Virus record (IMG/VR): IMGVR_UViG_3300027759_004177
Span: 292,866 to 356,865 of that record
Strand: one strand, 5' to 3'
DNA: 64,000 bases
The stretch's first letter is position 1. Each line of letters begins with the position of its first letter. Position numbers and translations under genes: made by a program. The notes below the pieces were generated by a model. The model had not been told where the DNA came from. It saw only the letters and a program-made list of their open reading frames with translations, and searched no databases. This document shows, in pieces, positions 1 to 64,000 of the stretch.

Positions 1-10
1 CGGATCGGTA

Positions 11-9001: not shown

Positions 9002-9684
9002 TAAATACTGATAACAAACAAAATTTAGAGGAAACAGCAGTGGAAAATACACCAAAACAGCCCGACGATACGTCCGGAATTTATGTTCGTGGACATATCA
9101 AGATATTTGATCCGGAATCTGGCGAAGTCTACATTGACAAGTCCAACGCTATTCACTACGAAAACTTCAGTCGTGCATTGGCCAGTAGTGTTGCCAACAA
9201 AGGACAGAATTTTATCTATGAAATGGTGCTAGGTAATGGCGGAACAAGTGTTGACACCACCGGTATCATCACATATCTTCCTACAAATACTTTGGGACAA
9301 AGCTCAAACTTGTACAATCCCACATTTAGTAAAATAGTAGACAACACCGCGGTTGCAAATTTGGACCCAGTCAATAACAAAATGACTGTAGCACACATTC
9401 CTGGTACAATTTATACAGACATTCTAGTTACTTGTTTGCTAGACTACGGCGAGCCAAGTGGTCAAGCCCTGTTTGACAACAGTCAAAACTTAAACAGCGA
9501 ATATGTGTTTGATGAATTAGGCCTGCGTGGTCGCAGTATAGATGGAACCACTGGGTTAACTTCAACTGGGTTGTTACTGACACACGTGGTATTTCATCCT
9601 GTACAAAAATCGTTAAACAGATTAATTCAAATAGACTATACTGTGCGTATTCAAACCCTAACTAACCTTAGCTCGATAGGATAA
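8998..9684 (+). CDS. Baseplate/virion structural protein
   Basis: ATG at 8998 overlaps the upstream stop (ATGA). An alternative GTG start at 9040 has SD GAGGA and follows a GATAAATA box. Motifs LLDYGEPSGQ, FDELGL and HPVQKSLNR; position between the giant structural gene and the fibre genes. The track start at 8899 is probably too long. Confidence 0.65.
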   Translation: MINTDNKQNLEETAVENTPKQPDDTSGIYVRGHIKIFDPESGEVYIDKSNAIHYENFSRALASSVANKGQNFIYEMVLGNGGTSVDTTGIITYLPTNTLGQSSNLYNPTFSKIVDNTAVANLDPVNNKMTVAHIPGTIYTDILVTCLLDYGEPSGQALFDNSQNLNSEYVFDELGLRGRSIDGTTGLTSTGLLLTHVVFHPVQKSLNRLIQIDYTVRIQTLTNLSSIG

Positions 9685-41986: not shown

Positions 41987-42908
41987 AATATTTTTGAAAA
42001 CCTTCTTCTATGTCCACACGTCCACGATAGCCAAAGTCTTGGCCGGCACGTATGGTGCTTAGTGTGCCACGACTGGGGAATCTTGGATTGGCATCGGCCA
42101 TTTTAATACGTCCGCCACCTGCAATCGCGACAGCCAGTTCTGCAGCTTCTAGTAGACTGCGGCCACAACTGCGTGTGATGTTATATGTACGTTTGGAACT
42201 GTTAAAACTAAGTGAGGCTTTGACAATACCATCAACGGCATCATCAACATAGGTAAAGTCTAAGTGTTCTTCTGCCCCGCATACCACAAGTTCTTGGTCT
42301 AGCATGGCACGGGTTAGGAACTTGCTGACCACGCGATCTTCAACATCTCGTGGTCCATACACCGCACTTGGACGTAACACGACATAATCAATTCCGGCCC
42401 GTTCACATAGATCACGTGTTAGGCTTTCACCGGCATACTTTAAAATACCATAGATACCTTTTGGATTACAACGCATATCTTCGTAGCCGTACAGCTCAAA
42501 GTCTCCGTAGACCATGCTAGAACTGATGTAAACAAATCTACGAACATCGAAGCGTTCGCTACAGCGTAATAAGTTAATCAATCCATTGGTCAATACTGTG
42601 GCGCCTTCTTCGGGATTTTCATCTACGGCTTTGGCCCTGGGAAATGCTGCACAATGTATCACAACATCAGGTCTACATTCATCAAACACATTTAGTAAGG
42701 CATTGTAGTTTTTAATGTCTACATGATGTATATCAGTCGTAGCAATACGTTCTAAACGTTCTTGATGTAGCTTGGACATTTCAGCATCAGGTACAATACC
42801 GTAGTTGGTAAAGTTATCTAGGATACAAACATTGTGTCCTTGTGCTTCAAGTTCAGCTACCACATTGTGCCCAATAAAACCTACACCACCGGTGACTAAT
42901 ATGTTCAT
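41961..42908 (-). CDS. NAD-dependent NDP-sugar epimerase/dehydratase (extended SDR)
   Basis: ILVTGGVGFIG, ISSSMVYG, YGILK (YxxxK), RPSAVYGP, DFTYVDD. Confidence 0.93.
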   Translation of the reverse strand: MNILVTGGVGFIGHNVVAELEAQGHNVCILDNFTNYGIVPDAEMSKLHQERLERIATTDIHHVDIKNYNALLNVFDECRPDVVIHCAAFPRAKAVDENPEEGATVLTNGLINLLRCSERFDVRRFVYISSSMVYGDFELYGYEDMRCNPKGIYGILKYAGESLTRDLCERAGIDYVVLRPSAVYGPRDVEDRVVSKFLTRAMLDQELVVCGAEEHLDFTYVDDAVDGIVKASLSFNSSKRTYNITRSCGRSLLEAAELAVAIAGGGRIKMADANPRFPSRGTLSTIRAGQDFGYRGRVDIEEGFQKYYEWLQRTI

Positions 42909-43816
42909 ACAGCCATCTCTGCTCGAATTGATGCATGGCTAGTGTAGCCTTCTAATGTGATATCTGACATGGTAAAATCAAAGATACTTTTAACATCGGG
43001 GTTGAGTAGAAGTTGTGGGGCAGGTAATGGTTCACGATCCAATTGTTCTCGAACCTGCTCTACATGATTCAAGTAGATGTGTGCATCTCCGAGAACATGA
43101 ACAAACTCCCCAACCGATAGGTCGCACACCTGAGCAATCAAGTGAGTTAAAAGAGAGTAGCTGGCAATGTTAAAAGGAACTCCTAGAAACATGTCACAAC
43201 TTCTTTGGTACATTTGGCAACTCAGTTTACGATCTCGACTTACATAAAACTGAGCAAACATGTGGCAAGGTGGTAGAGCCATTTGATCTAGTTCGCCAGG
43301 ATTCCACGCTGTTAATACATGTCTACGTCCATATGGATCTTGTTTAAGACTTTTAATTAGATCTTGTAATTGATCAACTTCTTTGATATGCAATAGGCCG
43401 CCACGATTAAAAATGTTACCAAAATCATCTTTAAATGTTTCGGCTTTGTGTTCTACAGGAGTGCGCCAACGGCGCCACTGTACTCCGTACACACGACCCA
43501 AGTCACCTTCAAATTTAGCCTTAGACTTCCAATAAGGAGCCAGAGCATTAGGAGTCCATATGGTTACTGTGCCATCGCTAGTACCATGTGTAATTTCTGC
43601 CAGTCTGCGTTCACTGCCTGAACCTTCAATCATCCATAGCAGTTCGCCTACACAGGCTCGCCAGGCAAGTTTTTTAGTAGTTACTGCCGGGAATGAAACA
43701 GATAAGTCATAGCGTTGTTGCAAACCAAACAGGCCGATAGTGCCCACGCCGGTTCGATCATCTCTTTGTTCGCCCTGCTCAAGAACTTGTCTAAGTGCGT
43801 CTAGGTATTGTTTCAT
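42905..43816 (-). CDS. thyA: Thymidylate synthase
   Basis: DDRTGVGT, ELLW, YGVQWR, MALPPCH, YQRSCDMFLGVPFNIASY, DAHIY. Confidence 0.97.
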   Translation of the reverse strand: MKQYLDALRQVLEQGEQRDDRTGVGTIGLFGLQQRYDLSVSFPAVTTKKLAWRACVGELLWMIEGSGSERRLAEITHGTSDGTVTIWTPNALAPYWKSKAKFEGDLGRVYGVQWRRWRTPVEHKAETFKDDFGNIFNRGGLLHIKEVDQLQDLIKSLKQDPYGRRHVLTAWNPGELDQMALPPCHMFAQFYVSRDRKLSCQMYQRSCDMFLGVPFNIASYSLLTHLIAQVCDLSVGEFVHVLGDAHIYLNHVEQVREQLDREPLPAPQLLLNPDVKSIFDFTMSDITLEGYTSHASIRAEMAV

Positions 43817-46966: not shown

Positions 46967-47148
46967 TATTCTACTCCAAAATGTTTTAAAATATTGTCAC
47001 TGCTCTGATAAGGTTCGGCGGTGTGTGCAATATCAGCACACTCCCGCACAATGGCCTGGGCAAACTCTTCAACCTTGAGTCGCCATATGGGGCTATGAGC
47101 AATGGTAAAGTGAGTGTCCTCGGCTATGCGTTGGATATTTTCGTTCAT
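46966..47148 (-). CDS. Hypothetical protein (MNENIQRIAED...)
   Basis: ATG at 47148 overlaps the vWA stop (ATGA); 60 aa. The track start at 47232 is probably too long. Confidence 0.6.
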   Translation of the reverse strand: MNENIQRIAEDTHFTIAHSPIWRLKVEEFAQAIVRECADIAHTAEPYQSSDNILKHFGVE

Positions 47149-48389
47149 TTCACAGCATCTTCGTAGTGGGCATACACACCAAACTCGGGCTGGGCTTCTT
47201 TGTTGCCTTTGATAATCCACACAGTATCGCAATACTGCTCGACCTGATCAGGGCTCCAACCAAAGAAACAAAAGTCAGTAAACATGATCAATTTCTTGGG
47301 TTCGATGTTGTTTTCTTCCAACCAAGTCCAAACACAATGCGGATCTGTACCACCGCCACCACCCGGTACAAAGCTCTCAATGTCAGCGATATTGTCCGAT
47401 GTGAATATTTCGTGATTGTGTACTTGGGTATCCCAACCCAACACATGGATACGATATTCGTCGTAACTTTCCATGATACCTTTGATTTCACTCAAGAAAA
47501 TCTTGAGATCTGGGTCAGTGATACTACCTGAAGTATCAATACCAATCACAACATCAATCTGGTTGCCGGGCAACATGCCGGGCATGACAGCATCCATATG
47601 CCACCCTCTGCGGCTGGGACGTTGCCAAGTAAAATCACTCTTGATAGAACTTTCAACCTGCTGATTGATCAACTCACGCCAGTTAATCACAGGTTCGGTT
47701 AGGTCCTTGATCATGCGTTTGACACCACCGGGCAAATTACCTGCACCCGAAGCATTGGCGGCATTTAGTACTGCATCTTTGATTTCGTCGCGAATAGCCT
47801 TCTTTTCTTCTTCGCTCAGGCGTGGACGACCGTTGCCTGGCTTGTCGCCATCTTCGCCTTCACCACCTTCTCCGTCCAAATGTTCGTCTAGTAGACGCTT
47901 CATCAATTCATCAATGTTGATTTTGTCGGCATTGGCATACAAGTCATCATACACTTCTTCGGCACTCATACCTTTGTACTTCGAGTCGTACAGGGCAACG
48001 GGAATCTTGTCGCCAATACGTTGTTCTACCAGGTCCCAGTTTACGCAATAGTCATCGGCAATGTTCCACAGTTTTGGATCTCTGTTGCCACGACGTCCCA
48101 TATGGTCATAAACCGCATGAAGCACTTCATGTCCGACCAAGAATTCCAATTGCTTTAGGGGAAGGTTATTGACAAACTCTGAATTATAGTAAAATTTACG
48201 GCCGTCTGTGGCGGCAGTAGGACACCATTCATCTGCGTTGATAAGTGTTAGGCGGGTAGCAAGGTTGCCAAAGAATGGAGCACGGAGCAAAAGACCAATA
48301 CGTGCGGTAACCAGTTTTTCGCGGGCACTTGCATCCGTCTTGGGATCTGTTACTGTTACCGCTTTACTTTTTTCTGCTAGTGTAGTCAT
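47145..48389 (-). CDS. DUF2201-like protein: HExxH metallopeptidase-like N-terminus plus vWA domain
   Basis: AATDG, HEVLH, WNIADDY, WQRPSRR, IDTSGS (MIDAS), GGGGT, FTD. ATG at 48389 has SD AGGAG. Confidence 0.88.
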   Translation of the reverse strand: MTTLAEKSKAVTVTDPKTDASAREKLVTARIGLLLRAPFFGNLATRLTLINADEWCPTAATDGRKFYYNSEFVNNLPLKQLEFLVGHEVLHAVYDHMGRRGNRDPKLWNIADDYCVNWDLVEQRIGDKIPVALYDSKYKGMSAEEVYDDLYANADKINIDELMKRLLDEHLDGEGGEGEDGDKPGNGRPRLSEEEKKAIRDEIKDAVLNAANASGAGNLPGGVKRMIKDLTEPVINWRELINQQVESSIKSDFTWQRPSRRGWHMDAVMPGMLPGNQIDVVIGIDTSGSITDPDLKIFLSEIKGIMESYDEYRIHVLGWDTQVHNHEIFTSDNIADIESFVPGGGGGTDPHCVWTWLEENNIEPKKLIMFTDFCFFGWSPDQVEQYCDTVWIIKGNKEAQPEFGVYAHYEDAVK

Positions 48390-48413
48390 TCTGTTCGCTC
48401 CTGTATTATATAT

Positions 48414-48442
48414 ATTATACATTTAATTGATTTTTTGGTCAA
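48414..48442 (-). promoter_or_regulatory. Sigma70-type promoter of the vWA gene
   Basis: TTGACC, 17-nt spacer, TATAAT, with TG at the extended -10 position. Confidence 0.8.
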
Positions 48443-48734
48443 CCTTTTGGTTAGCACGGTTTTTTCGTTGATTAAACACATCTTCCATGCCCTGTACACT
48501 AGAACCAGGCTTGATCACTTGTGGTGCTGTGGGCTGGCTGACTGCGACTGTGGCACGTGGTTCAGGTGCTGTGGGACGGCAAATATCATTGCCGCTGATG
48601 CTTCGGCTGATCTTGCAGTCTTGATCGCGAACAGCACTGATACCATGGTCTGCTAGACCTTTACCGGTGGTTTCTACCGAAGCCACACTAGCTAGACCGA
48701 CTATGAGCAAAGGACCTATGACCATTGTGGCCAC
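48423..48734 (-). CDS. Hypothetical protein
   Basis: 103 aa; hydrophobic N-terminus and two Cys; start uncertain (GTG 48734 or ATG 48725). Confidence 0.5.
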   Translation of the reverse strand: MATMVIGPLLIVGLASVASVETTGKGLADHGISAVRDQDCKISRSISGNDICRPTAPEPRATVAVSQPTAPQVIKPGSSVQGMEDVFNQRKNRANQKVDQKIN

Positions 48735-48913
48735 CTTAACATAAAATAAGTACGGTCTGCTGGGTCGGGGATATATAACATCATTTGTCCTAGTGCTATC
48801 TTATTGTGGCCTAACCAAGTACCAATGGATTCTTTGTTATCTAACCACCATTTACGATTCATGACTACACAAATCTCTGGAGTATCTAGATCTGGACAAA
48901 AGTCATAGTTCAT
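48716..48913 (-). CDS. Hypothetical protein
   Basis: 65-aa ORF following the AAA+ gene. Confidence 0.5.
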   Translation of the reverse strand: MNYDFCPDLDTPEICVVMNRKWWLDNKESIGTWLGHNKIALGQMMLYIPDPADRTYFMLRWPQWS

Positions 48914-48968
48914 AAGAATAAGGAGGACTTACAGCGTGTGCCTGCCCCCTGCCTGTGACAGCAACCTT

Positions 48969-50078
48969 TTACTTACCGCCTGCCGCGATAATGTACTTGC
49001 CGTACCGCTTGTGGAACTCATCAAAGTTCTTGAGCTTGCCTGGTACCAGGGGTAAGTTGTAAGTGGTCAACGCAACTCTAGCACCCATAACAACCAATTC
49101 AGTGGTAAAGTTATCCATCATAAAGCGGAAGAAGTTATCGGCCATACCGTGCCATTGGCTGATCTTTTCCTTGCCTAGTTTGGCATAAGCATCTTGCAAT
49201 TCATAGCACATGGACACAGTCAAGGAGTACATGGCACTGACTTCTTTGACATCTAAAGTCTTGACCTTACCTGCCAAGATTTCGCTTGGGTTAGGCATCT
49301 TGCTGGCAACCTTGCGGTGTGCCATAAACTTAACTGCCAAGCCATCACCGATAGTACCAGCAATCAAGTCCGACAATTCTGCATCTGTGGCATCTTCGTC
49401 ATGTAAGAATTCACTTACAAAGTGCCATGAACGTGGTGTTGCAAAGGCACGGCTGGCTGAGCGTGGGTTAAAATCCATCAAGTCTTGCTTGGCAAAACCA
49501 ATGTAACCTACCACGTCCTTGTGCTCACGATTCTGCACAGCCCACTCGTTCCATGAGTCGTAATCAGCACGTACTTCCAAATGTACGAAACGATTTGCCA
49601 GGGGCATTGGCATACGGAAACTAACACCTTTGTCGCTTTCACGATTACCCGCGGCCACAATTACCACATTCTTGGGCAGGTGATACTTGCCTAGTCTGCG
49701 ATTGAGAATCAACTGATAGGCCGCGGCCTGTACTGCCGGGGCCGCCACATTCATCTCGTCTAAGAACAAGGTCACAACAGGGTATTCTGCGGCCAACTCT
49801 GGTGTTGGTAAGTCCACTGGCTCGGCCCAGTCCATTTTGCCCAACTCTTTGTTATAAAACGGAATACCACGCAGATCTGTGGGCTCCATTTGGCCTAGAC
49901 GTAAGTCAATGGTATAACCGCCTAATTCTTGGGTAAGACCGGCTACCAATTCACTTTTACCTACTCCGGGAGGACCCCAAATAAAAACAGGGCGTTGGAC
50001 TTTGAATGCACGAAGCAAGCGGCTACGGCATTCATTGGGTGTTACTGTACGGCTTTCACTAATAGTTGTACTCATCAC
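48969..50078 (-). CDS. MoxR-type AAA+ ATPase
   Basis: Walker A GPPGVGKS, Walker B LFLDEMN, QLILNR, AAGN, LANRF, TPRSW; partner vWA gene downstream. Confidence 0.92.
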   Translation of the reverse strand: MMSTTISESRTVTPNECRSRLLRAFKVQRPVFIWGPPGVGKSELVAGLTQELGGYTIDLRLGQMEPTDLRGIPFYNKELGKMDWAEPVDLPTPELAAEYPVVTLFLDEMNVAAPAVQAAAYQLILNRRLGKYHLPKNVVIVAAGNRESDKGVSFRMPMPLANRFVHLEVRADYDSWNEWAVQNREHKDVVGYIGFAKQDLMDFNPRSASRAFATPRSWHFVSEFLHDEDATDAELSDLIAGTIGDGLAVKFMAHRKVASKMPNPSEILAGKVKTLDVKEVSAMYSLTVSMCYELQDAYAKLGKEKISQWHGMADNFFRFMMDNFTTELVVMGARVALTTYNLPLVPGKLKNFDEFHKRYGKYIIAAGGK

Positions 50079-51176: not shown

Positions 51177-52229
51177 TTACTTTTTACCTATATACTCGTG
51201 ACTGTAACAAACCCTATAAGCATCTCGAACAGTGGTTGTACCGCCGTAACCTGCCATTTTTCTAGCAGTACCATCCTTGTTCAAGTAACTACCTACCCTG
51301 GATTTTTTATTCATTGACGTAGGGCGCCATAGTTCGGATTTTTCACGATGCTCGCCGAAACTAGGGTGTGCTGTTTTACTAAAGTATCTTAGACCATGGC
51401 TAACATAGATTTCGGCAATGGCATCACTAAATCGTGTACCTATGCCCATGCCTTGAAACTCGGGTAAGATCACAGTACGATGGCCACGCCAGTAACTGTG
51501 AATATCTCTATTAGTTGAATGTATAGCAGCATGAAACCCAATGGGTTTATCACCTAAGAGTAAGACATAGTAATGAGCACTTTTACTAATAGCAGTATCT
51601 AAATAGTGATACTTACTGAAATATCTCCAATAGTCGACACTTGAGCTTTTGATGGTGAGTGCAAGTTTTGGTCTTGTCCCCAATCGAAGAAGTGACCTCC
51701 GATTTTCTAAGACACAGAGATCTGTGTCATAAACGTATTCAGGATCTAACCATTCTACTATGTCTCTATGGCAACTTGCAATATATAGTGGATCTGTTTT
51801 ACCCTGCCGATTGTAGAACTTGCGAATACTTAGGGCAAGACTTTTAGCAGTATCGCGATCAACAACTGACGTAAACTCGTCAACTGTGCCGAGTCCTTGA
51901 TCTAAACTAATGGCCATTTCAAAGCGATGATACTCGCCATTGCTTAAGGTATTGGGTGGTCGGAACCAAGTAGGAATACTACGCAGTCCGCAGGCAAGTA
52001 AGAGTTCTTCGCCACGTTCCGGAGTAGAGAAGTTTTCTATTGTAGTGCGAGCGTTATCTACTACAGGCTGACGTAGTTCACCTAGGCTACGCAGGATAGT
52101 GCTTTTACCACTACCGCTTGTGCCTACAATTAATACAATACCATCAGTTGGAAGCTCGGGGATAGTTACGCCGCTTTCCTTATAGTCTGTAATATCGTAC
52201 TTCTTTTTAATTTCTTCTAAGTAACTCAT
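51177..52229 (-). CDS. ABC-ATPase fused to a GNAT acetyltransferase
   Basis: Walker A GTSGSGKS, signature LSNGE, Walker B VDEF, H-loop SCH; C-terminal RTVILPEFQGMGIG (acetyl-CoA motif A). No transmembrane segment. Start is ATG 52229 or 52235. Confidence 0.88.
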   Translation of the reverse strand: MSYLEEIKKKYDITDYKESGVTIPELPTDGIVLIVGTSGSGKSTILRSLGELRQPVVDNARTTIENFSTPERGEELLLACGLRSIPTWFRPPNTLSNGEYHRFEMAISLDQGLGTVDEFTSVVDRDTAKSLALSIRKFYNRQGKTDPLYIASCHRDIVEWLDPEYVYDTDLCVLENRRSLLRLGTRPKLALTIKSSSVDYWRYFSKYHYLDTAISKSAHYYVLLLGDKPIGFHAAIHSTNRDIHSYWRGHRTVILPEFQGMGIGTRFSDAIAEIYVSHGLRYFSKTAHPSFGEHREKSELWRPTSMNKKSRVGSYLNKDGTARKMAGYGGTTTVRDAYRVCYSHEYIGKK

Positions 52230-53017
52230 ATGCAAACCTTATAATTTCCTTGTTTAGACCAATCAGATATGCTAGTTACATTGGTGGGTATAGCAGTACT
52301 AGGCCAAACAAACAAGTAACCGTTACCGAGATCAAATCTCTTTAGAAAATTTATACTAGAACCTTCTCCGTATGGAGCTGAGGAGTATAATACTTTCCCG
52401 TCAGCATCTAACGCTTCATAACCGTTGTTAATAGGCACAGGATTTTTTTTAGTTTTTCTAGTCTGGTGAATTTTATAAGAACTTGCGTTGGGTGTTGCAA
52501 AATTTTGTTCTTCTAAGTAAATTGACTTGTGCCCTAAGTCCTCTCCGTAAATTAAAAGAATACTAGTTAGTACTGTACAATTGGCGGCCGTTATTGTCTT
52601 ATTGGCATAATCTCGATACTCCTGAATCGCCAACGGCATAAGAATTCCAGGATCTCCTTTCCATCCTTGCATGTCAATTGGTGAACGACGAGAAGGCAAC
52701 AATACAGAATTTGGTCTACGCACCCATAAAGAATCTTTGATAATTTCAAAGTATTGGCCACCGCTTTTGAGCATATGAGGTTTTGGTTTGGTATTGTAAA
52801 ACTTAATAGCATCGTTACTCTTAACATCAAATGCTCGATGATCGACCTTTACGTCAACAATGGTACCTGATCCGCCAACTCTTACTGCATTGGCATAAAA
52901 AGGTTTTAGGCCAAGAGCAATAACCTTTTCTGCTGTGGTGCTGTTAGGGACATTGATGCTCCAGGCCGTTTGAGCCCATGCAGCAATGTTAGTGGCAATT
53001 TGTTCTGTTAGTATCAT
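52226..53017 (-). CDS. Hypothetical protein, possible PD-(D/E)XK nuclease
   Basis: GGSGTIVDVKVDHRAFDVKS fits a D...(D/E)xK arrangement; overlaps both neighbours. Confidence 0.45.
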   Translation of the reverse strand: MILTEQIATNIAAWAQTAWSINVPNSTTAEKVIALGLKPFYANAVRVGGSGTIVDVKVDHRAFDVKSNDAIKFYNTKPKPHMLKSGGQYFEIIKDSLWVRRPNSVLLPSRRSPIDMQGWKGDPGILMPLAIQEYRDYANKTITAANCTVLTSILLIYGEDLGHKSIYLEEQNFATPNASSYKIHQTRKTKKNPVPINNGYEALDADGKVLYSSAPYGEGSSINFLKRFDLGNGYLFVWPSTAIPTNVTSISDWSKQGNYKVCI

Positions 53018-56651: not shown

Positions 56652-57647
56652 TTATTCCTTTTCTGGGTAACTTGCTTCTAAAAATCTAGTGTACTGTTCA
56701 GCGTATTCTGACATTTTTACTAGATCATATTTGCCGCAAAACTTTAAAAAATGGGCACCAATCATGGGGCGGTTAAGTGCCACGCTATTTCCATCTATGG
56801 TGCCACGGATTTTAACTTTGACGTCGTCGGGTTGTGCGGTTAGGTCAACTAGCACACGATTACGTTCATAGTCGTCCAGCACACGATGTTCCTGACCGTT
56901 GTGATCAGTCCAGCGTTGTAGCATTAGATTATTCCACGCAAAGCCTTTCGCTGTTTTATCGTTAAATGCCTCAATGAGTCCCACTTTATTTTTACTTCCC
57001 ACCTTACGCACCCCTGGGTATGCCGAGAAAATGTTATCTGTGGGGTCACCTCGCATACATTTTTCGAAAAGAATCCACTTAGGATCCGGAATTGTTTTTG
57101 GTTCCTTAGTTTTTTTATCTTTGACTGGGGCACCTTTCTTGTCGAAAATACCTTGAATAGTGTGGAGCTCATCTGCGATTCCGTTATATTGATTTACATT
57201 TTCTGCTAGTAGTTGATGAAAGTCTGTATCACTTGACACAATGGTATGATGATCACGTGGGTGGGCTTGTATCCAACCGGCAATCAAATCATCTGCTTCA
57301 AGTTCAGGGTGTTGTAATACTGTGCAGTTTGTTTTTGTGGCCAAGAAGTCTTTGAGAGTATCGAAGCTTTCCCAAAACAATGCATCTTCTTCAGCTTCTT
57401 TTTCTGTCAAGGCCGCACGAGCCACACTACGATTCTTTTTATAAGGCTCATAATAGTCTTTACGCCAACTACGACCTTCCAAGCAGAAAATAACGTGATC
57501 TGCCTTTTGATCTCTCCAGCTCTTATTAACACTATTTAGCGTTACCTGAATGGCGAAACCCAGCCTATCCCAAGTATCAGCTTGACGGTGTGCGGCATGC
57601 CTGGCACGGAAGAAAGTATTAGCGGTGTCAACAAGTAGATATCTCAT
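56652..57647 (-). CDS. rnh: T4-like RNase H / 5'-3' flap exonuclease
   Basis: YLLVDTAN, YKKNR, LEADDLIA, IVSSDTDFHQL, GDPTDNI. ATG at 57647 sits just downstream of a promoter. Confidence 0.88.
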   Translation of the reverse strand: MRYLLVDTANTFFRARHAAHRQADTWDRLGFAIQVTLNSVNKSWRDQKADHVIFCLEGRSWRKDYYEPYKKNRSVARAALTEKEAEEDALFWESFDTLKDFLATKTNCTVLQHPELEADDLIAGWIQAHPRDHHTIVSSDTDFHQLLAENVNQYNGIADELHTIQGIFDKKGAPVKDKKTKEPKTIPDPKWILFEKCMRGDPTDNIFSAYPGVRKVGSKNKVGLIEAFNDKTAKGFAWNNLMLQRWTDHNGQEHRVLDDYERNRVLVDLTAQPDDVKVKIRGTIDGNSVALNRPMIGAHFLKFCGKYDLVKMSEYAEQYTRFLEASYPEKE

Positions 57648-57653
57648 GTAGTT

Positions 57654-57682
57654 ATAATAGCATATAATGATTAAGTTGTCAA
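57654..57682 (-). promoter_or_regulatory. Sigma70-type promoter of rnh
   Basis: TTGACA, 17-nt spacer, TATTAT. Confidence 0.7.
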
Positions 57683-58372
57683 TAGCGTTTGGACATAATT
57701 TTGGTATAGGAATTCGGCCCAGGCGGTATGGGCATCTGGACCAAAATGATATGATCCAGGACGAACCGTTTCGAATCCCCGTTGCTTTAACCAATTGTAG
57801 TAAGTATATTCTGGACTGTATGGATGTATATAACTGTTGCCCCATTCAAATTTTAAAGTTTTGGTAAATGGTTCAAATGTGTTAAAAAATATGTGTGGTA
57901 TTTTGTTCTGGTCAAGATATCTATGCAGTTGGTGTATTTTTTCGTGTGCGTTTCTAACAGCATGATCGTAGTTGATGTTTAAAATGTAACCGCGGTATTG
58001 ATCTTTGATTTCTGTAGGCCAATCTTCACCAATGCCACCGGCATTGACTTGCCAATACTGTTCAGTGCCTTCGTGCCACCACTCTTCTCGTTCCCATGTT
58101 GACCACCCAATGATGGCCAACTCGGGTTTTACAATGTCAAGGGCCTTGTAAGTGGTACGAATGATTCTGTCGTTGCTACTGGCTGACTCTGCATCACATT
58201 GTAGTATGGCACCCAGCATGTTGGCCAACTCACAGCCGTAGCTGACACGTAGATTATCTGGATGCGGTTCACGTGCCATGTTCCAATATAGGCTATCGTC
58301 TTGGGCAAACGAATAGGTGTTTACTGCTTCGGCACCAGCACTATGGCTGTCACCATTTACATACAAGATCAC
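57671..58372 (-). CDS. SGNH-like hydrolase or acyltransferase
   Basis: ILYVNGDSHSAG, AESASSN, GWS, SYHFG. Confidence 0.55.
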   Translation of the reverse strand: MILYVNGDSHSAGAEAVNTYSFAQDDSLYWNMAREPHPDNLRVSYGCELANMLGAILQCDAESASSNDRIIRTTYKALDIVKPELAIIGWSTWEREEWWHEGTEQYWQVNAGGIGEDWPTEIKDQYRGYILNINYDHAVRNAHEKIHQLHRYLDQNKIPHIFFNTFEPFTKTLKFEWGNSYIHPYSPEYTYYNWLKQRGFETVRPGSYHFGPDAHTAWAEFLYQNYVQTLLTT

Positions 58373-58755
58373 GATACTTCAGTACGCCCGTCACCAATAT
58401 CTCTACGTTCAATGTTGCGTGGACGTGCATCTATTGGCTGATTGGCTTCCCATTGTTCAAAGTTTTCTGCCACTACATTTTTACACACATCAGCAAACCA
58501 ACGGTCTACCATGTCTGCATCTGTATCTGCAGGTTTGTGTTGATAACCAGCACGTACCAGATTGGCAATAAACTTGTCATTCCAATCTAGCTCAAATGCA
58601 CCGTTGCCAATGTTGTCTGGATCTAAATCTACACTAAGAATCGCCACATAAGGTTCGCCCTTTTCTGTGGCCAAGTCCTTGGCAGATTTTTTTCGAGTCT
58701 TGGGTGCTTCTGGTTTTGTTTCGGGTTTCTTTTTAAAGCGATCAAATATTCCCAT
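58369..58755 (-). CDS. Hypothetical protein
   Basis: 128 aa; SD AAGGA. Confidence 0.75.
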   Translation of the reverse strand: MGIFDRFKKKPETKPEAPKTRKKSAKDLATEKGEPYVAILSVDLDPDNIGNGAFELDWNDKFIANLVRAGYQHKPADTDADMVDRWFADVCKNVVAENFEQWEANQPIDARPRNIERRDIGDGRTEVS

Positions 58756-59704
58756 TTTTATTCCTTATGTTCTTAATGTAAAAACTTGCTACAAAAAATA
58801 TTACAAATGATGCCAGTGTTATCACAGTTGGTGTCAGCATATTTAGATTTTTACTCATGAAGTAAAAATAGTTTACAGCATTCATGGCCAGTACTGTGTA
58901 CAACATGGTTTCTTTACGTACCCATCCCAACAGTATGTTACCAAATGGAGCAAAAAACAACACCACCGGGGCAGCCGCCAGCCACATCAAATAAACATCC
59001 GGGTGTACAGCATCCAAAAACAAACCACGATAGGCAATGCCAAACACAGTGATCACAGCCATGAGCACAATGCTGATGTCTGTGCTGATCTTTTCCTTCA
59101 TGCCGTAGTAGCAGGTCAACGCAATGTAAATCAACATGTCACTGCCTGTGCCGAACATGGCAGAGGCACAACCACCTATGAATGAAAATATTGTAAAAGT
59201 AACAAATTGGGAACCTTTGAGTTCGACATCATCCACGGTGCCACGACCACGGCTGATCAAGTAGGCCACAATAAAGGCCAAGGCCAGACTCACAAACAAC
59301 ATCTGTACGGTTTTGAAAGCAACAGCACCGGCCACAGTGGTCATAAGCACAAAACCAATCATGTTTACGGCCGCATAGAACGGTATGTGTCTAAATGTTC
59401 GTAGATCATGTCCTTTGCGTGTCAAGATCCATATGGCCGCTGATACCATGCCAATGCTTTGTATAGCCAGACTAAAATCACGTGCCGCAGGCGGAGTAAT
59501 GTTAAAGTATAAACTCAAAATTGGAAATGCCACAGCACCGCCGCCTTCTGGGGTAAAGCCAGCCACTGCTGACCCAAACACCATCATTAACGCATACAGC
59601 CAGTGTGTTTCGTACAAGGCAAAACCCGGTCCGGTCAAGATCAGGTATAACCAAGTGGTCAATACTGCCACTGCCCACACGGGCCAAATCATCATTTTAT
59701 TCAT
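58742..59704 (-). CDS. TauE/SafE-like (sulfite exporter family) membrane protein
   Basis: Multiple transmembrane helices; GFTPEGGGAVAFP and the internal repeat SAMFGTGSD. Confidence 0.65.
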   Translation of the reverse strand: MNKMMIWPVWAVAVLTTWLYLILTGPGFALYETHWLYALMMVFGSAVAGFTPEGGGAVAFPILSLYFNITPPAARDFSLAIQSIGMVSAAIWILTRKGHDLRTFRHIPFYAAVNMIGFVLMTTVAGAVAFKTVQMLFVSLALAFIVAYLISRGRGTVDDVELKGSQFVTFTIFSFIGGCASAMFGTGSDMLIYIALTCYYGMKEKISTDISIVLMAVITVFGIAYRGLFLDAVHPDVYLMWLAAAPVVLFFAPFGNILLGWVRKETMLYTVLAMNAVNYFYFMSKNLNMLTPTVITLASFVIFFVASFYIKNIRNKNGNI

Positions 59705-60201
59705 TTTGCATCCTGTTCTGTTACTTCTACCCAGGTGTAATCACCCAACCACTTGACCTGGCAAATATATTCATAATCTGCAGGCGCACCTGTGGTCCAA
59801 TCATTTGGGCCCAAGTGGGTCAATCTAGTGCCTTGTTTGTTGTGTTCGTAAGCCAACCAATAGGTTTGGCCGTGATACACTTGGAACTCGTACTTGGCGG
59901 CATGTACCATGTCGGTAATATCTAATCGACGCTTGAGTTCTGCTGCTTGTTTTTGTAATACTGTTACCAATTCTGTAATACGGTTATATTCTTGTTGAGC
60001 ATACATACGGGCCACATTGACCATGATGTCTTTTTGCTTTTCAACAGGAATAAGATCAAACTTGGGTCCACCCGCTTCAGTGGGATACGTGCTTACGTTG
60101 CGATTAAAAAACGCAACTAAGGTATTGCCAACTGTGACGTCAAAACTCTCTCGTCCGTCGGTGACATTGGATTTTTTTTCAGTCACTGTTGTAGTTGCCA
60201 A
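59701..60201 (-). CDS. Hypothetical protein (DUF2452-like by recall)
   Basis: YPTEAGGPKF...KQAAELKRR...AKYEFQVYHGQTYWL. Confidence 0.5.
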   Translation of the reverse strand: MATTTVTEKKSNVTDGRESFDVTVGNTLVAFFNRNVSTYPTEAGGPKFDLIPVEKQKDIMVNVARMYAQQEYNRITELVTVLQKQAAELKRRLDITDMVHAAKYEFQVYHGQTYWLAYEHNKQGTRLTHLGPNDWTTGAPADYEYICQVKWLGDYTWVEVTEQDAK

Positions 60202-60407
60202 ATTAAGTGTTCCTGGGGAGCATGATATCTGTATTCAAACACAGGTTCACCGGGGCCGACCCAGACTGCTGTGCCACGATATGCATGTTGCAACCAGATT
60301 TGACGGTTAGTGAGTTCACATTGTTTCGGCCACCAGACAAATACGTAATCCCAGTCGGCTCGTGCATGAAACTGATCATAGTGGTCCATGCCCGGTATGG
60401 GAGCCAT
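60183..60407 (-). CDS. Hypothetical protein
   Basis: ATG at 60407 immediately follows the queE stop; 74 aa, Trp-rich. Confidence 0.55.
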   Translation of the reverse strand: MAPIPGMDHYDQFHARADWDYVFVWWPKQCELTNRQIWLQHAYRGTAVWVGPGEPVFEYRYHAPQEHLIWQLQQ

Positions 60408-60408
60408 A

Positions 60409-61269
60409 TTATTTGCCCCAGCCGTTGCCCCAGAGATCCACATGCAAGCGTGGGCTGTAGTTGAATCCCAGTTTGCAACAGATGTTGGCAATGTTTAGTT
60501 TGTTTGATTCGTATGGATCAACTACACCGCCCTGTGGCATCAAGTATACCACGCCTTTGAAACCGTCATGTCTAAATGCATCCACAGCACGTATGGCTTC
60601 TGTAACGTGATCTTCAGTTTCAACCACAAACTTGAGATAAGTGTGTCCGTAAGTTTGATAGATATTGACAATCTTGGGTTTGATAGCATCATCCCACGAC
60701 TCGCCTGACGCACTTAGTTTGGCACTGACACTGAATGTGACTTCACGTCCGGCTTTGTCACTGGCCCAGTCAATCAAGTAATCGCGGAAGTCTTCGTGTA
60801 GTTCTTGAGTACCGTTGGTTTCAAATGTGATATTCTTCAAGTCTGCCATGCGGTGATGACTCAACAGTTCTGCATAAGCACGTTGCCAACCTAGCAAAGG
60901 TTCACCGCCTGTAATAACCAAGTGAACATCATTGCCATTGTTTTGCATCCACATGTTATTAGGTGTCAGCGCCAACATCTTTTCCACAAGTTCTTCTGTG
61001 GTCAGTGTGTGACTCAGGTGTTTGTAGGCTGGATGCCACGATGCATAACTGTCACATCCTGTTTCTACCAATGGAAGATCGTTGAATGTTTTGTACAGTT
61101 CTACCTTTTTGGCCACGTCATCTGCACCTGTTGATTTTTCGCCAGGCTTGCAACCAAAACCTGAACAGGTAAAGTTACATCCGTATGTTCTTAAGAATAC
61201 GCTAGGTACTCCAACAAAGCGACCTTCGCCTTGTAAGCTATAAAATATTTCGCTGACTTTAATCTTCAT
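60409..61269 (-). CDS. queE: 7-carboxy-7-deazaguanine synthase (radical SAM)
   Basis: EIFYSLQGEG...VFLRTYGCNFTC...GCDS...ITGGEP...ETNGT...SAKL...KFVV...PRLHVDLWG; next to queD and folE. Confidence 0.88.
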   Translation of the reverse strand: MKIKVSEIFYSLQGEGRFVGVPSVFLRTYGCNFTCSGFGCKPGEKSTGADDVAKKVELYKTFNDLPLVETGCDSYASWHPAYKHLSHTLTTEELVEKMLALTPNNMWMQNNGNDVHLVITGGEPLLGWQRAYAELLSHHRMADLKNITFETNGTQELHEDFRDYLIDWASDKAGREVTFSVSAKLSASGESWDDAIKPKIVNIYQTYGHTYLKFVVETEDHVTEAIRAVDAFRHDGFKGVVYLMPQGGVVDPYESNKLNIANICCKLGFNYSPRLHVDLWGNGWGK

Positions 61270-61534
61270 ATATTGTTGACCATTGTGTTAATTTTTGACT
61301 CTTTCTCACTTGTGCCGCATGTAATTCTGCTTCTGTAAAAATATTGTGTGCCTTGAGTAATTCTACTAACAATGTAACATCGCCTAGTTCTTGTACCAAA
61401 TGTTCACGCTGGGTACCACCATCCTTGTAGCTATTGTCAATACCAAAGCGGCGAATCTTGCTGATAGCAACAATAACTTCAGCACACTCCTCTTGCAGTA
61501 TGTCTAAGATTTCGTTAACCTTCGTAGATTGCAC
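61259..61534 (-). CDS. MazG-like nucleotide pyrophosphohydrolase
   Basis: LQEECAEV...ISKIRRFG...LVQELGDV. GTG at 61534 has SD GGAG; the track gives 61570. Confidence 0.75.
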   Translation of the reverse strand: MQSTKVNEILDILQEECAEVIVAISKIRRFGIDNSYKDGGTQREHLVQELGDVTLLVELLKAHNIFTEAELHAAQVRKSQKLTQWSTIYED

Positions 61535-61964
61535 TATTGGCTCCGTGTTCGGCACACTCAACTCTAACACAATAACAACGATTATTAGTTTTTTCTCGAA
61601 TCAATTGATCTGCAAAATTAAAAGCGTGTTCAGCAAACTTTTCTGCACCTACTCCATCAAACATTCGGATCTCTACTAGGTCTAATGCTTGTAATTCTTC
61701 GAACTTGGCCAAGTGTGGATCTTGTCGATCCAGGGCCAACTTGTGATCAAAGTGATCTTCTAGCCAGGCTTTTAGTTCTTTAAGTCCTCCAAAGTCCACT
61801 GCCCAGTTCTTGTTGTCTAATTGGTCACAACCAAATGTAAATGTGAACGCTAGGCTGTAACCATGTAGCAGATGACAGTGACTGTGATCAGCATTGGGCT
61901 GTCTAAATACAGCACTCAATCCAATGTTGTGTCCGTAATGTTTTGTTGAGTAATACTTTGCCAT
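61515..61964 (-). CDS. queD: 6-carboxy-5,6,7,8-tetrahydropterin synthase
   Basis: SHCHLLHGY, VDFGGLK, FDHKL, AEKFAE, VECAEH; SD AGGAG. Confidence 0.9.
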   Translation of the reverse strand: MAKYYSTKHYGHNIGLSAVFRQPNADHSHCHLLHGYSLAFTFTFGCDQLDNKNWAVDFGGLKELKAWLEDHFDHKLALDRQDPHLAKFEELQALDLVEIRMFDGVGAEKFAEHAFNFADQLIREKTNNRCYCVRVECAEHGANSAIYEG

Positions 61965-61970
61965 TGATTT

Positions 61971-62035
61971 CTCCTATGTTAATTATAGCATAGGCGGCAG
62001 AATTTATCAAGCGGGAATGACGCCAAGACCGCTGT
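61971..62035 (-). ncRNA. Candidate cis-regulatory pseudoknot with anti-SD hairpin in the queD leader
   Basis: AGCGG/CCGCU stem with a 14-nt loop; loop GGCG can pair with downstream CGCC; CCUAUG/CAUAGG hairpin covers part of the SD. Confidence 0.4.
61982..62010 (-). promoter_or_regulatory. Sigma70-type promoter upstream of queD
   Basis: TTGATA (62010-62005), 17-nt spacer, TATAAT (61987-61982). Confidence 0.6.
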
Positions 62036-62052
62036 TTTGGGGATATAACTAT

Positions 62053-62598
62053 TTATCTCCACCATTCTTCCCAAGGAAAAACACACCATATGGGTTCTTC
62101 CAGTTTGTTTATTGACATGCCTGTATAGTCTACATCTTTAAAGTCACTGGCCTCGTTGTTGATCAACACAGCAAAACGAACATTGTTGCCCCATACTGTC
62201 TTCCAACGCTCGTGGTCTGGCAAGCAACCGCTTGTCCAATCTTCGCGAATCCAATTTAGGGTAGCACCTGTGTCATTGATATCATCCACAACCAGAATGT
62301 TTTTGGCGTTGATACTGTAATCAAAGTCGGCTAACAACCGTTCTTCTTTGGGCACATATCCAAATGCTTCTTCGGCCATCCACAAGTTGCTTTCTGGTCC
62401 ATGATCACTGTCACGTAAACTTACTTTCAGCGTTTCCATTGGAACTTCTAAATAATGACTCAGCATGGCAGCTGGTACTAGGCCGCCACGAGTAAGTCCC
62501 ACAATGTAGTCAGGCTTCCATCCATCTGCATTCATGGCACGAATGATATCGTGTACCCAAGCTCGAACTGTTGAATCTTTGTAATATACTTTGTTCAT
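62053..62598 (-). CDS. Type I phosphoribosyltransferase (purine-PRT-like)
   Basis: IVGLTRGGLVPA, PRPP-binding ILVVDDINDTGATL, WCVFPWE. Confidence 0.9.
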   Translation of the reverse strand: MNKVYYKDSTVRAWVHDIIRAMNADGWKPDYIVGLTRGGLVPAAMLSHYLEVPMETLKVSLRDSDHGPESNLWMAEEAFGYVPKEERLLADFDYSINAKNILVVDDINDTGATLNWIREDWTSGCLPDHERWKTVWGNNVRFAVLINNEASDFKDVDYTGMSINKLEEPIWCVFPWEEWWR

Positions 62599-62599
62599 T

Positions 62600-62770
62600 T
62601 TATCTTCTCGTGTTAATTCTTATACATTCGGCTAATTCTCGATCTGAATGCGATTTTGTAATACAGTTTCTAGCACTGGCATCAGCCAGCGGATCGTGAG
62701 TTTGATAATATACTGCCATGGCAAGTATGATAGCAAGTAGAATTGCAATAACGATGTCGCTCAATTTCAT
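62600..62770 (-). CDS. 56-aa protein with N-terminal transmembrane helix
   Basis: Translated by hand: MKLSDIVIAILLAIILAMAVYYQ...; SD AAGGA. Confidence 0.55.
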   Translation of the reverse strand: MKLSDIVIAILLAIILAMAVYYQTHDPLADASARNCITKSHSDRELAECIRINTRR

Positions 62771-62780
62771 TTGAATATCC

Positions 62781-63008
62781 TTATTTTTCTAAATTACGTA
62801 TACGCAAGCTAAGATCACGACCATCTGTGACCTGTCGATTTTCAAGTTGTGTTACCTTGCGTTGCAATCTAGAAATTCTAATGTGTGCATATACCAGCAC
62901 AGCAACCACAAGAGTAAATGTCAGTCCCCAACCGGCAACAATGCCGATCATCCAAGACCATAGGTCGGATATTTCTGTTACAACAGCCTGTAGACTTTGT
63001 GTAATCAT
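62781..63008 (-). CDS. Small membrane protein with coiled-coil C-terminus
   Basis: 75 aa; ATGA overlap with the upstream gene. Confidence 0.6.
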   Translation of the reverse strand: MITQSLQAVVTEISDLWSWMIGIVAGWGLTFTLVVAVLVYAHIRISRLQRKVTQLENRQVTDGRDLSLRIRNLEK

Positions 63009-63430
63009 GCAAATGCTTCCTCTTCTAAATAGCGTTTTAATTCTTTGTCCGTGGGTTCTACTGTGTAATTGTTCTTGAAGAAGATTTCGTAGCTGTCCGA
63101 ACCGTATTTTCCAATGCCATACAGTTTGTCAGCTTCATTGCCATCCCATTCCATGAAATCCAGACTCATCTGTGTGAGACGATCATAGCGACGATTTACC
63201 ATGCCCAGACTCCAGATCACATCACGCACCTCGTCCGGAGTGGCCTGCAGGAACGCATAAGGGGTTCTCCACTTGCTCCAAAATACAGGAGCCACAGTCT
63301 TTACGGGTTTACGGCCTGTTTGGTTCAACATTATGACCGCAACCATGTGTTGCCAGGCCGCATCGACACCCTCCAAGCCATCAGGCAACTGCTGTTGCAC
63401 CATGAGATCATCGCGGAGTGGCTGTATCAT
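63005..63430 (-). CDS. HhH-GPD (MBD4-like) DNA glycosylase
   Basis: WQHMVAVIMLNQT...LGMVNRR...LYGIGKYGSDSYEIF...PTDKELKRY. Confidence 0.8.
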   Translation of the reverse strand: MIQPLRDDLMVQQQLPDGLEGVDAAWQHMVAVIMLNQTGRKPVKTVAPVFWSKWRTPYAFLQATPDEVRDVIWSLGMVNRRYDRLTQMSLDFMEWDGNEADKLYGIGKYGSDSYEIFFKNNYTVEPTDKELKRYLEEEAFA

Positions 63431-64000
63431 CTTGGTGCAAACTCTTGTTGCAGTTTGATATTGTCCATGAACTCTTTCTTGGTGCCAGGATCATCTTTGA
63501 ACGCACCTTTGAGCACCGTGGTCTGAGTCAAACTTGAATGTGCCATGATACCACGATTTTCACAGCAACCATGTGTGGCCTGTATGTACACACCAATATT
63601 TTCGCTGTCGGTGGCCCGTGCTATTTCTCTGGCAATGTCGTTGGCCAGTTCTTCTTGTAGAGTACCGCGACGAGCACACCACTGAGCAATCCTAGTGTAC
63701 TTAGATAAGCCAATAAGTTTGTTGGCAGCAATGATACCAATATAAGCCACCCCAGATACAGGCTGGTGATGATGACTGCACATACTACGCAATTCACTTC
63801 TAACAACCAACATTCCTTCATATCGATCCTCACTATCGTTGGGGAAAGCAGTGGCATCGGGTCTGGGTTCATATCTACCTGCCATGATTTCGTTGAAATA
63901 CATCTTGGCCAAGCGTCGTGCTGTGCCACGACTGTTGGGATCTGTCGCACGATCAATCAACAAGGTGTCCAACACCTGTTCAAATGCTTTGGTAGCCTCG
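63427..64000 (-). CDS. folE: GTP cyclohydrolase I, 5'-truncated by the window
   Basis: TARRLAKMY, SMCSHHHQP, GLSKYTR, QEEL, HGCCENRG; frame open to the window edge. Confidence 0.95.
   Translation of the reverse strand, partial: EATKAFEQVLDTLLIDRATDPNSRGTARRLAKMYFNEIMAGRYEPRPDATAFPNDSEDRYEGMLVVRSELRSMCSHHHQPVSGVAYIGIIAANKLIGLSKYTRIAQWCARRGTLQEELANDIAREIARATDSENIGVYIQATHGCCENRGIMAHSSLTQTTVLKGAFKDDPGTKKEFMDNIKLQQEFAPR

Follow-up and report, generated by a model that had tools for sequence, protein, structure and literature searches.

A 357-kb freshwater phage, like many uncultured relatives and one cultured cyanophage, carries the genes for a 7-deazaguanine base together with a purine phosphoribosyltransferase (PRTase), but no DNA transglycosylase was detected in it. 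The phage may therefore make the modified base as a nucleotide rather than swap it into finished DNA, a reading inferred from sequence comparison alone. The window, i.e. the whole 64,000-nt stretch that was analysed, is the last 64 kb of a complete 356,865-bp phage record (G000; IMGVR_UViG_3300027759_004177), which CheckV rates 100% complete. The window ends because the contig ends. The first and last ~282 bases of the record overlap imperfectly, and folE runs across this junction. The initial annotation had described, on the minus strand, the order folE, glycosylase, two small membrane ORFs, PRTase, queD, MazG-like gene and queE, and had stated that the window contains no queC, dpdA or tgt. 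The ORF and family searches confirmed this observation, with the order exactly as described, and none of the three missing genes was detected in the rest of the record either. folE, queD and queE are present in single copies in the genome. The features and the matches that identify them are listed in the table.

Table. Genes of the deazaguanine locus and neighbouring features (window coordinates unless marked G000, which denotes positions in the complete record)
Feature	Position	Strand	Size	Evidence and remarks
folE (GTP cyclohydrolase I)	63427-64000, continuing into G000:1-545	-	C-terminal 190 codons in the window; 278 aa in all	PF01227 E 2e-39; phrog_2197; Lys/Asp-rich N-terminal extension of about 90 aa
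MBD4-like HhH-GPD DNA glycosylase	63005-63430	-	141 aa	E 7e-11 to MBD4 glycosylase domains over residues 25-135; GIGKYGxDSY retained, including the catalytic Asp in GxDSY; GIGKYGSDSYEIF present; PF00730 at its cut-off; in 6/80 related loci and in locus L096
Small membrane ORF, one hydrophobic helix	62781-63008	-	75 aa	Conserved in 17-19 of 80 loci
Small hydrophobic ORF, one hydrophobic helix	62600-62770	-	56 aa	Poorly conserved, in only 2/80 loci; may not be functional
Type I purine (6-oxopurine-type) PRTase	62053-62598	-	181 aa	PF00156 E 3e-13; XPRT/HGPRT NCBIfam hits; best solved relative 1vdm, a purine PRTase, E 8e-9; invariant VDDInDtGxT and FPWE motifs
queD (6-carboxytetrahydropterin synthase)	61515-61964	-	149 aa	PF01242 (PTPS) E 1.5e-14; phrog_2389 E 1e-39; catalytic Cys motif CxxxHGY as in phiST QueD, not the DpdL motif
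MazG-like all-alpha NTP pyrophosphohydrolase	61259-61570	-	about 90-103 aa	PF03819 E 6e-5; phrog_4856 E 2e-19; true start probably inside the ORF; the only MazG in the genome
queE	60409-61269	-		phrog_2076 E 1e-53; several QueE TIGRFAMs E 1e-10 to 1e-13, below their cut-offs; N-terminal SLQGEG motif
Small conserved protein	60183-60407	-	about 74 aa	Starts right after the queE stop codon; follows queE in 53/80 loci; no Pfam or PHROG match
DUF2452 protein	59701-60201	-	166 aa	PF10504 E 1e-7; frequent neighbour (28/80 loci); model pLDDT 71, one long helix plus a small sheet, no significant fold match
FEN	56652-57845
DpdL homologue (outside the window)	G000:8763-9212			BLASTP E 7e-18 and 34% identity to phiST DpdL; LxxxHRHxF kept

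We next asked whether the PRTase belongs to the module. Among the 80 closest viral loci, the PRTase was linked to queE in 76, to queD in 66 and to folE in 48, although the gene order around it varied. The same linkage occurred in distant lineages, namely the T4-like Synechococcus phage BUCT-ZZ01, with the operon QueE-PRT-x-QueD-FolE, and five contigs binned into MAGs. In contrast, bacterial homologues (up to 41% identity) were not linked to que genes. The PRTase is thus an integral, conserved member of the deazaguanine module. The best PDB hits were purine, HGPRT and XGPRT enzymes, and the PRPP motif (VVDDINDTGAT) and the RGG loop (TRGG) were invariant in 28 sequences, in line with the 6-oxopurine PRTases. 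The MazG-like gene is frequent (36/80 loci), but it is absent from more than half of the loci and from BUCT-ZZ01. Its acidic motifs QEECxE and ExGD were invariant, and its predicted four-helix fold (model pLDDT 90) best matched HisE, iMazG, DCTPP1 and YpjD, matches that are weak in E-value but consistent. The glycosylase, by comparison, is an accessory gene and not part of the conserved core, and the small membrane ORFs are accessory as well.

As the initial annotation had proposed as a check, we searched the rest of the genome for the missing enzymes. The QueC profile PF06508 found nothing in G000 and nothing above its cut-off in 39 related records, whereas the control genomes did match. A DpdA1/2 profile that found phages 9g (1e-38) and Dp-1 (3e-155) returned nothing in G000 (best E 0.79), and a DpdA3 profile that found phiST and CP220 was likewise negative. 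An hhalign comparison of all 280 ORFs of 150 aa or more gave at most 2.8% probability, and phmmer with the HVTV-1 and CP220 proteins gave no hit; DpdA4 was covered only by this single-sequence phmmer, with no profile and no positive control. The Pfam TGT model was also negative, but this is uninformative because it missed all four control phages. No hit with the DpdA1/2, DpdA3 or DpdA4 queries was obtained in the complete BUCT-ZZ01 genome either. Thus, no dpdA was found just outside the window or anywhere else in the genome. Since DpdA families are very divergent and were missed before, an undetected or host-encoded transglycosylase cannot be excluded.

The initial annotation had missed a homologue of DpdL, which lies 8.7 kb past the junction. 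DpdL, a QueD paralogue, is the proposed, unvalidated CDG decarboxylase of phage phiST, in whose DNA all G is replaced by 7-deazaguanine (dDG) (PMC10516641). The homologue was present in 17 of 19 PRTase-type records, including BUCT-ZZ01. We then compared the two architectures. The 37 DpdA3 loci carried QueD-QueE-FolE-DpdL-kinase-DpdA3, with DpdA3 adjacent to the P-loop kinase-like gene in 33/37, and no PRTase within 10 kb (0/37). The 85 PRTase loci carried no DpdA3 (0/85) and no kinase, and the best kinase hit in G000 was E 0.05. However, phiST itself encodes a homologous PRTase next to a dNMP-kinase-like gene and RNR, elsewhere in its genome, as well as a MazG-like gene in its cluster. PRTase and DpdA3 can therefore coexist in one genome. 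Searches for other nucleotide-metabolism genes found RNR large and small subunits, a T4-type dNMP kinase and a family-B polymerase (PolB, about 15 kb past the junction) in G000, but no guanylate kinase. Some G-containing palindromes were avoided (AAGCTT, 13 seen against 53 expected; GCGC, O/E 0.45), and phiST showed similar avoidance.

Given these results, we tentatively assume that the cluster is the core of a 7-deazaguanine pathway that works through a nucleotide rather than a DNA transglycosylase. FolE, QueD and QueE would convert GTP to the free base 7-carboxy-7-deazaguanine (CDG), which follows from family membership and established pathway knowledge. Since no QueC is present, the pathway would not go on to preQ0. 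The DpdL homologue is expected to decarboxylate CDG, or its nucleotide, to 7-deazaguanine. The PRTase would then join the deazaguanine base to PRPP and give a 7-deaza-GMP analogue, as the CDG-specific PRTase TubE does in the QueC-less tubercidin cluster (PMC6112128). Host kinases, together with the phage's own ribonucleotide reductase, dNMP kinase and polymerase, would carry the analogue into phage DNA, which is less certain, and the MazG-like enzyme would lower competing dGTP or tune the pool. What the comparisons establish is the gene identities, the conserved linkage, and the failure of profiles with working controls to find QueC, DpdA1/2 or DpdA3; the decarboxylation, the substrates of the PRTase and MazG-like enzyme, and the presence of the base in DNA are inferred. 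Several observations speak against this view, among them the coexistence of PRTase and DpdA3 in phiST, the divergence of the DpdA families, the lack of a guanylate kinase gene and the absence of MazG from more than half of the loci and from BUCT-ZZ01. Moreover, the PRTase keeps the Asp of the 6-oxopurine PRPP motif (D109, invariant in 28/28), which in HGPRT and XGPRT contacts N7, an atom absent in deazaguanine. In addition, que-linked PRTases did not form a clean clade apart from bacterial housekeeping enzymes in a tree, as those of L090 and L096 grouped with Flavobacteriales enzymes. The interpretation in the initial annotation, a possible DpdA-independent route in which the PRTase makes a deazaguanine nucleotide, MazG trims the competing pool and the glycosylase edits DNA, is partly supported: comparative genomics favours the PRTase, the recurring MazG-like gene and the absence of QueC and detectable DpdA, but the glycosylase is not supported as a working part.

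Other explanations appear less likely. The PRTase may be an ordinary guanine/xanthine salvage enzyme that regenerates GMP, and hence GTP, for FolE, or recycles guanine, with the base put into DNA after replication by a transglycosylase that is too divergent to detect or is supplied by the host. The conserved motif, the interleaving with housekeeping homologues and the coexistence of both genes in phiST fit this possibility, as do the facts that DpdA3 and DpdA4 were overlooked until 2023 (PMC10516641) and that base exchange would release guanine, which a PRTase could recycle. On the other hand, the controlled searches found no DpdA, PRTase and DpdA3 are mutually exclusive within the gene neighbourhood, and salvage alone does not explain why this PRTase family in viruses is almost always beside queE. 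We consider it unlikely, though the strongest of the alternatives.

It is still less likely that the module makes a free deazapurine nucleotide or nucleoside not destined for DNA, such as an antimetabolite, an inhibitor of a host defence or a signal, which would resemble the first steps of tubercidin or toyocamycin biosynthesis, with MazG as the tailoring phosphohydrolase. The gene content parallels TubC/A/B plus TubE without QueC, a nucleotide hydrolase is present, and a TauE-type permease lies just downstream. However, no GMP reductase, UbiD decarboxylase or nucleoside deoxyribosyltransferase was found in the genome, the TauE gene occurs in only 4/80 loci, the module lies among replication genes (FEN and PolB), and it shares DpdL with phages whose DNA is fully dDG. 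The simpler alternative in the initial annotation, auxiliary queuosine or folate metabolism plus purine salvage, is weakened and seems the least likely. In this view, the phage boosts CDG supply for the host's QueC, QueF and Tgt so that host or phage tRNAs carry queuosine, and the PRTase and MazG are unrelated housekeeping genes. folE, queD and queE are common viral auxiliary genes, pieces of queE and queD appear in freshwater metatranscriptome libraries, and no insertion enzyme was found. Yet no QueC was found in any of 40 records, the conserved DpdL homologue, if it is the proposed decarboxylase, would divert CDG away from preQ0, and the PRTase is embedded inside the operon in independent lineages.

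Published work concludes that every virus with deazaguanine synthesis genes also encodes a DpdA, so that the modification is always made after replication (PMC10516641). Herein, a complete genome, a cultured cyanophage and dozens of uncultured relatives keep the base-synthesis genes and, in most records examined, DpdL, carry a PRTase in the cluster, and lack every detectable DpdA. Full-text literature searches found no paper linking a PRTase to phage deazaguanine genes. If the PRTase acts on the deaza base, this would be the first pool-level route to a modified guanine in phage DNA, and it would supply enzymes for making 7-deaza-GTP or 7-deaza-dGTP biologically. A bolder possibility, which we regard as doubtful but not excluded, is that a large, widespread group of freshwater and marine phages, including jumbo phages and at least one cultured T4-like cyanophage, synthesises a 7-deazaguanine deoxynucleotide de novo (GTP, then CDG, then DpdL and PRTase, then RNR and kinases) and replicates with it, so that G is replaced before replication with no transglycosylase at all. 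This would overturn the published generalisation and raise the question of whether the PRTase, kinase-like and MazG genes of phiST contribute to its 100% replacement. The idea is directly testable because BUCT-ZZ01 grows on the model strain PCC 7942.

Among known systems, the dDG system of Cellulophaga phages such as phiST (Cui, Hutinet et al., NAR 2023, PMC10516641) shares FolE, QueD of the CxxxHGY type and QueE with no QueC, a DpdL homologue with LxxxHRHxF, a MazG-like gene in the cluster, a position near the DNA polymerase and a homologous PRTase (33% identity). It differs in having DpdA3 and the CGPG_00066-type kinase-like gene, neither of which was found here, where the PRTase sits inside the cluster instead. 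Tubercidin biosynthesis in Streptomyces tubercidicus (PMC6112128) likewise combines GTP cyclohydrolase I, CPH4 synthase and CDG synthase without QueC, and has a PF00156 purine-type PRTase and a nucleotide phosphohydrolase in the same cluster. The phage lacks the GMP reductase-like enzyme (TubD/ToyE; PF00478) and the UbiD decarboxylase (TubF; PF01977), so it has no route to 7-deazaadenine; its hydrolase is MazG-type, not Nudix, and the context is a phage replication region, not a secondary-metabolite cluster. DpdA-dependent modification (phages 9g, CAjan and Dp-1; the bacterial dpd cluster) starts from the same FolE/QueD/QueE steps, and its likely purpose is protection of DNA from restriction, but it needs QueC (preQ0) and a TGT-family transglycosylase acting on finished DNA, neither of which was detected here. 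Finally, the proposed logic is that of pool-level base replacement, as with PurZ/MazZ/DatZ for 2-aminoadenine in S-2L or the dCTPase plus dCMP hydroxymethylase for hydroxymethyl-C in T4: make the unusual nucleotide, remove the competing canonical dNTP with a MazG- or HD-type hydrolase, and let the phage polymerase use the new pool. There are no homologous enzymes apart from the MazG fold, and in the phage studied here the new base would be built as a free base and would have to be re-attached to ribose phosphate.

The 356,865-bp IMG/VR virus record, of which the window is the last 64 kb, is rated 100% complete by CheckV. The first ~282 bases of the record recur, with a few mismatches, at its end. 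Therefore, the record closes on itself, as a circularly permuted genome or a mix of variants would, although IMG/VR classes it as 'linear'. The folE gene, which appears cut at base 64000, continues at the contig start and encodes 278 aa, including an N-terminal extension of about 90 residues that begins with a Lys/Asp/Asn-rich low-complexity stretch and is not covered by the GTP cyclohydrolase I profile. The DNA was found in many freshwater metagenomes from several studies. We also compared contigs of four sequencing runs with the record, which showed its presence in freshwater DNA libraries and pieces of queE and queD in two freshwater metatranscriptome libraries, some without mismatches. The latter is consistent with transcription, although DNA carry-over in the RNA libraries is not excluded, and the comparison gives no evidence on modification.

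The observation made in the initial annotation was correct, since all eight ORFs that it named exist on the minus strand and in the order given. The family assignments are clear for folE, queD, queE and the PRTase, whereas the MazG-like protein and the glycosylase each sit at their Pfam cut-off. The glycosylase is truly MBD4-like, as evidenced by an E-value of 7e-11 to the solved MBD4 catalytic domains and the retention of GIGKYGxDSY. The MazG-like protein keeps the acidic motifs of the family in 21 homologues; a sequence search of the PDB found nothing, but the protein is predicted to fold (pLDDT 90) into the all-alpha NTP pyrophosphohydrolase fold, and its best structural neighbours are HisE, iMazG, DCTPP1 and YpjD, with weak E-values but consistent identity. 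The PRTase is a 6-oxopurine-type enzyme whose best solved relative is 1vdm, followed by HGPRT and XGPRT enzymes, and its PRPP motif VVDDINDTGAT is intact. In addition, QueD carries the catalytic Cys motif CxxxHGY, as does the QueD of phage phiST.

We next asked whether the PRTase is part of the module. A scan of viral contigs found 260 relatives of the PRTase, of which the best 80 were examined. The queE gene lies beside the PRTase in 76 of these loci, queD in 66 and folE in 48, many loci being cut by contig ends. The MazG-like gene is present in 36 loci, DUF2452 in 28, the glycosylase in only 6 and the TauE/SafE-type permease that follows DUF2452 here in only 4. A small protein follows queE in 53 loci. 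The gene order around the PRTase differs between sub-lineages, yet the PRTase stays next to queD or queE. Furthermore, the linkage recurs in distant lineages: the cultured T4-like Synechococcus phage BUCT-ZZ01 has a tight QueE-PRT-x-QueD-FolE operon with a PRTase 27% identical to the one studied here, and five contigs binned into MAGs show it too. In contrast, about 75 bacterial homologues (Sphingomonadales, Flavobacteriales; up to 41% identity) show no such linkage. The glycosylase is therefore accessory and the PRTase is core, and the interpretation in the initial annotation, which had given both a role in a possible DpdA-independent route, was partly supported. The DUF2452 protein gave a model of pLDDT 71 without a significant fold match and had atlas hits only to DUF2452 itself; the DUF6071 neighbour matched only DUF6071 clusters, a few with GDSL-lipase hits, and is not TGT-like; and the small post-queE protein and other conserved neighbours had no Pfam or PHROG match.

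Four PRTase loci carried a protein similar to phiST DpdL, the QueD paralogue proposed by Cui, Hutinet and colleagues as the CDG decarboxylase giving 7-deazaguanine (PMC10516641). A profile built from these proteins finds one strong match in this genome (E 5e-75), 8.7 kb past the junction and on the same strand, where the initial annotation could not have seen it. The protein is 34% identical to phiST DpdL (E 7e-18) and has the signature LxxxHRHxF. Homologues occur in 17 of 19 PRTase-type records, including BUCT-ZZ01. Pfam does not see this family: a Pfam search for a second QueD paralogue found none, and the DpdL homologue was found only with the custom profile. Two sets of sugar-nucleotide-type enzymes were also seen, one of them between folE and the DpdL homologue and conserved upstream of folE in many relatives (gene families 8, 12 and 20 of the related loci). 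These may have a role in further base or DNA decoration, but this is only a possibility. The coordinates are collected in the table.

Features of the phage record with their coordinates (G000, the whole 356,865-bp record; L002, the contig start)
Sequence	Positions	Strand	Feature
Window and G000	63719-64000 and 1-282		Overlapping ends of the record
Window and G000	63427-64000 and 1-545	minus	folE, split across the ends
G000 (L002)	8763-9212 (8763-9212)	minus	DpdL homologue
L002	9214-10347		Radical SAM/SPASM gene, next to the DpdL homologue
L002	595-4732		DegT-like fragment, AMP-binding enzyme, radical SAM enzyme and epimerase/dehydratase
Window	40877-43816		Full DegT aminotransferase plus an epimerase, directly beside thymidylate synthase
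Window	47145-50078 and 51177-52235		MoxR-like AAA ATPase with a DUF2201 metallopeptidase/VWA partner, and a protein combining a P-loop NTPase with a GNAT acetyltransferase domain
Window	58742-59704		TauE/SafE-type anion permease, directly after DUF2452
Window	60155-61930		Matches of metatranscriptome contigs to queE and queD

To compare the PRTase loci with phiST-type loci, we collected 145 DpdA3 homologues, built a profile and retrieved 37 viral loci (L170-L206). These loci share QueD-QueE-FolE-DpdL, a P-loop kinase-like gene homologous to phiST CGPG_00066 (beside DpdA3 in 33 of 37) and DpdA3, and none has a PRTase within 10 kb. Conversely, none of the 85 PRTase loci has DpdA3 or that kinase. 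However, phiST itself has both, its PRTase lying 17 kb from the cluster, next to a dNMP-kinase-like gene and the ribonucleotide reductase. The same base-synthesis set thus comes with either DpdA3 plus the kinase or the PRTase. The published account says that other deazaguanine phages lack the kinase-like gene, and its conservation in these DpdA3 loci hints at nucleotide-level chemistry in DpdA3 phages too.

Given that the initial annotation had found no queC, dpdA or tgt in the window and had named a dpdA just outside it as grounds for refutation, we examined whether a transglycosylase is really absent from the genome. Searches of the genome and 12 relatives with the Pfam TGT model (PF01702) were negative, but the same search found nothing in phages 9g, Dp-1, HVTV-1 and CP220 (L207-L210), all of which have a DpdA, and in the protein database the Dp-1 DpdA homologues carry no Pfam domain. 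Negative TGT searches in phages are therefore not evidence of absence, and these results were discarded in favour of family-specific profiles. A profile from 120 homologues of the Dp-1 DpdA finds Dp-1 (3e-155) and 9g DpdA1 (1e-38) but nothing in this genome (best E 0.79), in the PRTase loci, in BUCT-ZZ01 or in the larger relatives. The DpdA3 profile finds phiST (9e-123) and CP220 (1.7e-18) and nothing here. In addition, hhalign of all 280 ORFs of 150 aa or more against the DpdA3 alignment gave at most 2.8% probability, and phmmer with the HVTV-1 DpdA4 and the CP220 protein found nothing. A still more divergent or host-encoded enzyme cannot be ruled out. QueC is absent from this genome and from 39 related records.

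The state of the DNA was approached through restriction-site avoidance. The genome strongly under-represents GCGC (O/E 0.45), CGCG (0.54), AAGCTT (13 seen, 53 expected), GTGCAC (22 seen, 66 expected) and TGCGCA (0 seen, 9 expected), but phiST, whose DNA is fully modified, shows similar avoidance, so that this proxy for modification points neither way. A search for nanopore runs in which miscalls at G might be seen listed none. Among other genes, the genome encodes the large and small subunits of a class I ribonucleotide reductase, a T4-type dNMP kinase, thymidylate synthase, a family-B DNA polymerase about 15 kb past the junction and a 5'-3' exonuclease just downstream of the module. Guanylate kinase, GMP reductase, UbiD, nucleoside deoxyribosyltransferase and DNA polymerase A are absent. 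The missing GMP reductase and UbiD exclude a tubercidin-like route to 7-deazaadenine. The MazG of the cluster is the only MazG in the genome.

CDG is a free base, and known biochemistry offers two ways to bring such a base into nucleic acid chemistry: base exchange by a TGT or DpdA enzyme, and phosphoribosylation, which TubE performs specifically on CDG in a cluster that also lacks QueC (PMC6112128). Since no transglycosylase is detectable and a purine-type PRTase is embedded in the operon across lineages, the most economical reading is that the PRTase makes the deaza-GMP analogue, with DpdL acting before or after it. Kinases, the phage reductase and the phage polymerase would then take it into DNA, while MazG would lower dGTP. 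Our data establish what the genes are and that they occur together; each catalytic step beyond CDG, including the substrates of the PRTase, DpdL and MazG, is an inference. We hold this model only tentatively, and its full form, with DNA as the end point, is more doubtful still.

Several findings speak against the model. The PRTase retains the Asp that contacts N7 in canonical enzymes; a PRTase tree, with long branches for BUCT-ZZ01 and phiST, does not separate que-linked enzymes from housekeeping relatives; and phiST has both a PRTase and DpdA3. These points keep alive, although as an unlikely alternative, the view that the PRTase serves salvage while a hidden transglycosylase modifies the DNA. 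A small-molecule end product is possible but less likely again. Support of tRNA, which the initial annotation had offered as part of its simpler alternative, also remains possible but is the least likely of these; the conserved DpdL homologue and the lack of QueC weaken it.

A literature search found no paper describing any of this. The parts themselves are known, and the phiST system is the closest relative. What differs is the DpdA-less, PRTase-containing architecture, which is widespread: relatives of the PRTase were found in 260 viral contigs, freshwater and marine, and the group includes jumbo phages and a T4-like cyanophage. This architecture conflicts with the published statement that all such viruses encode a DpdA.
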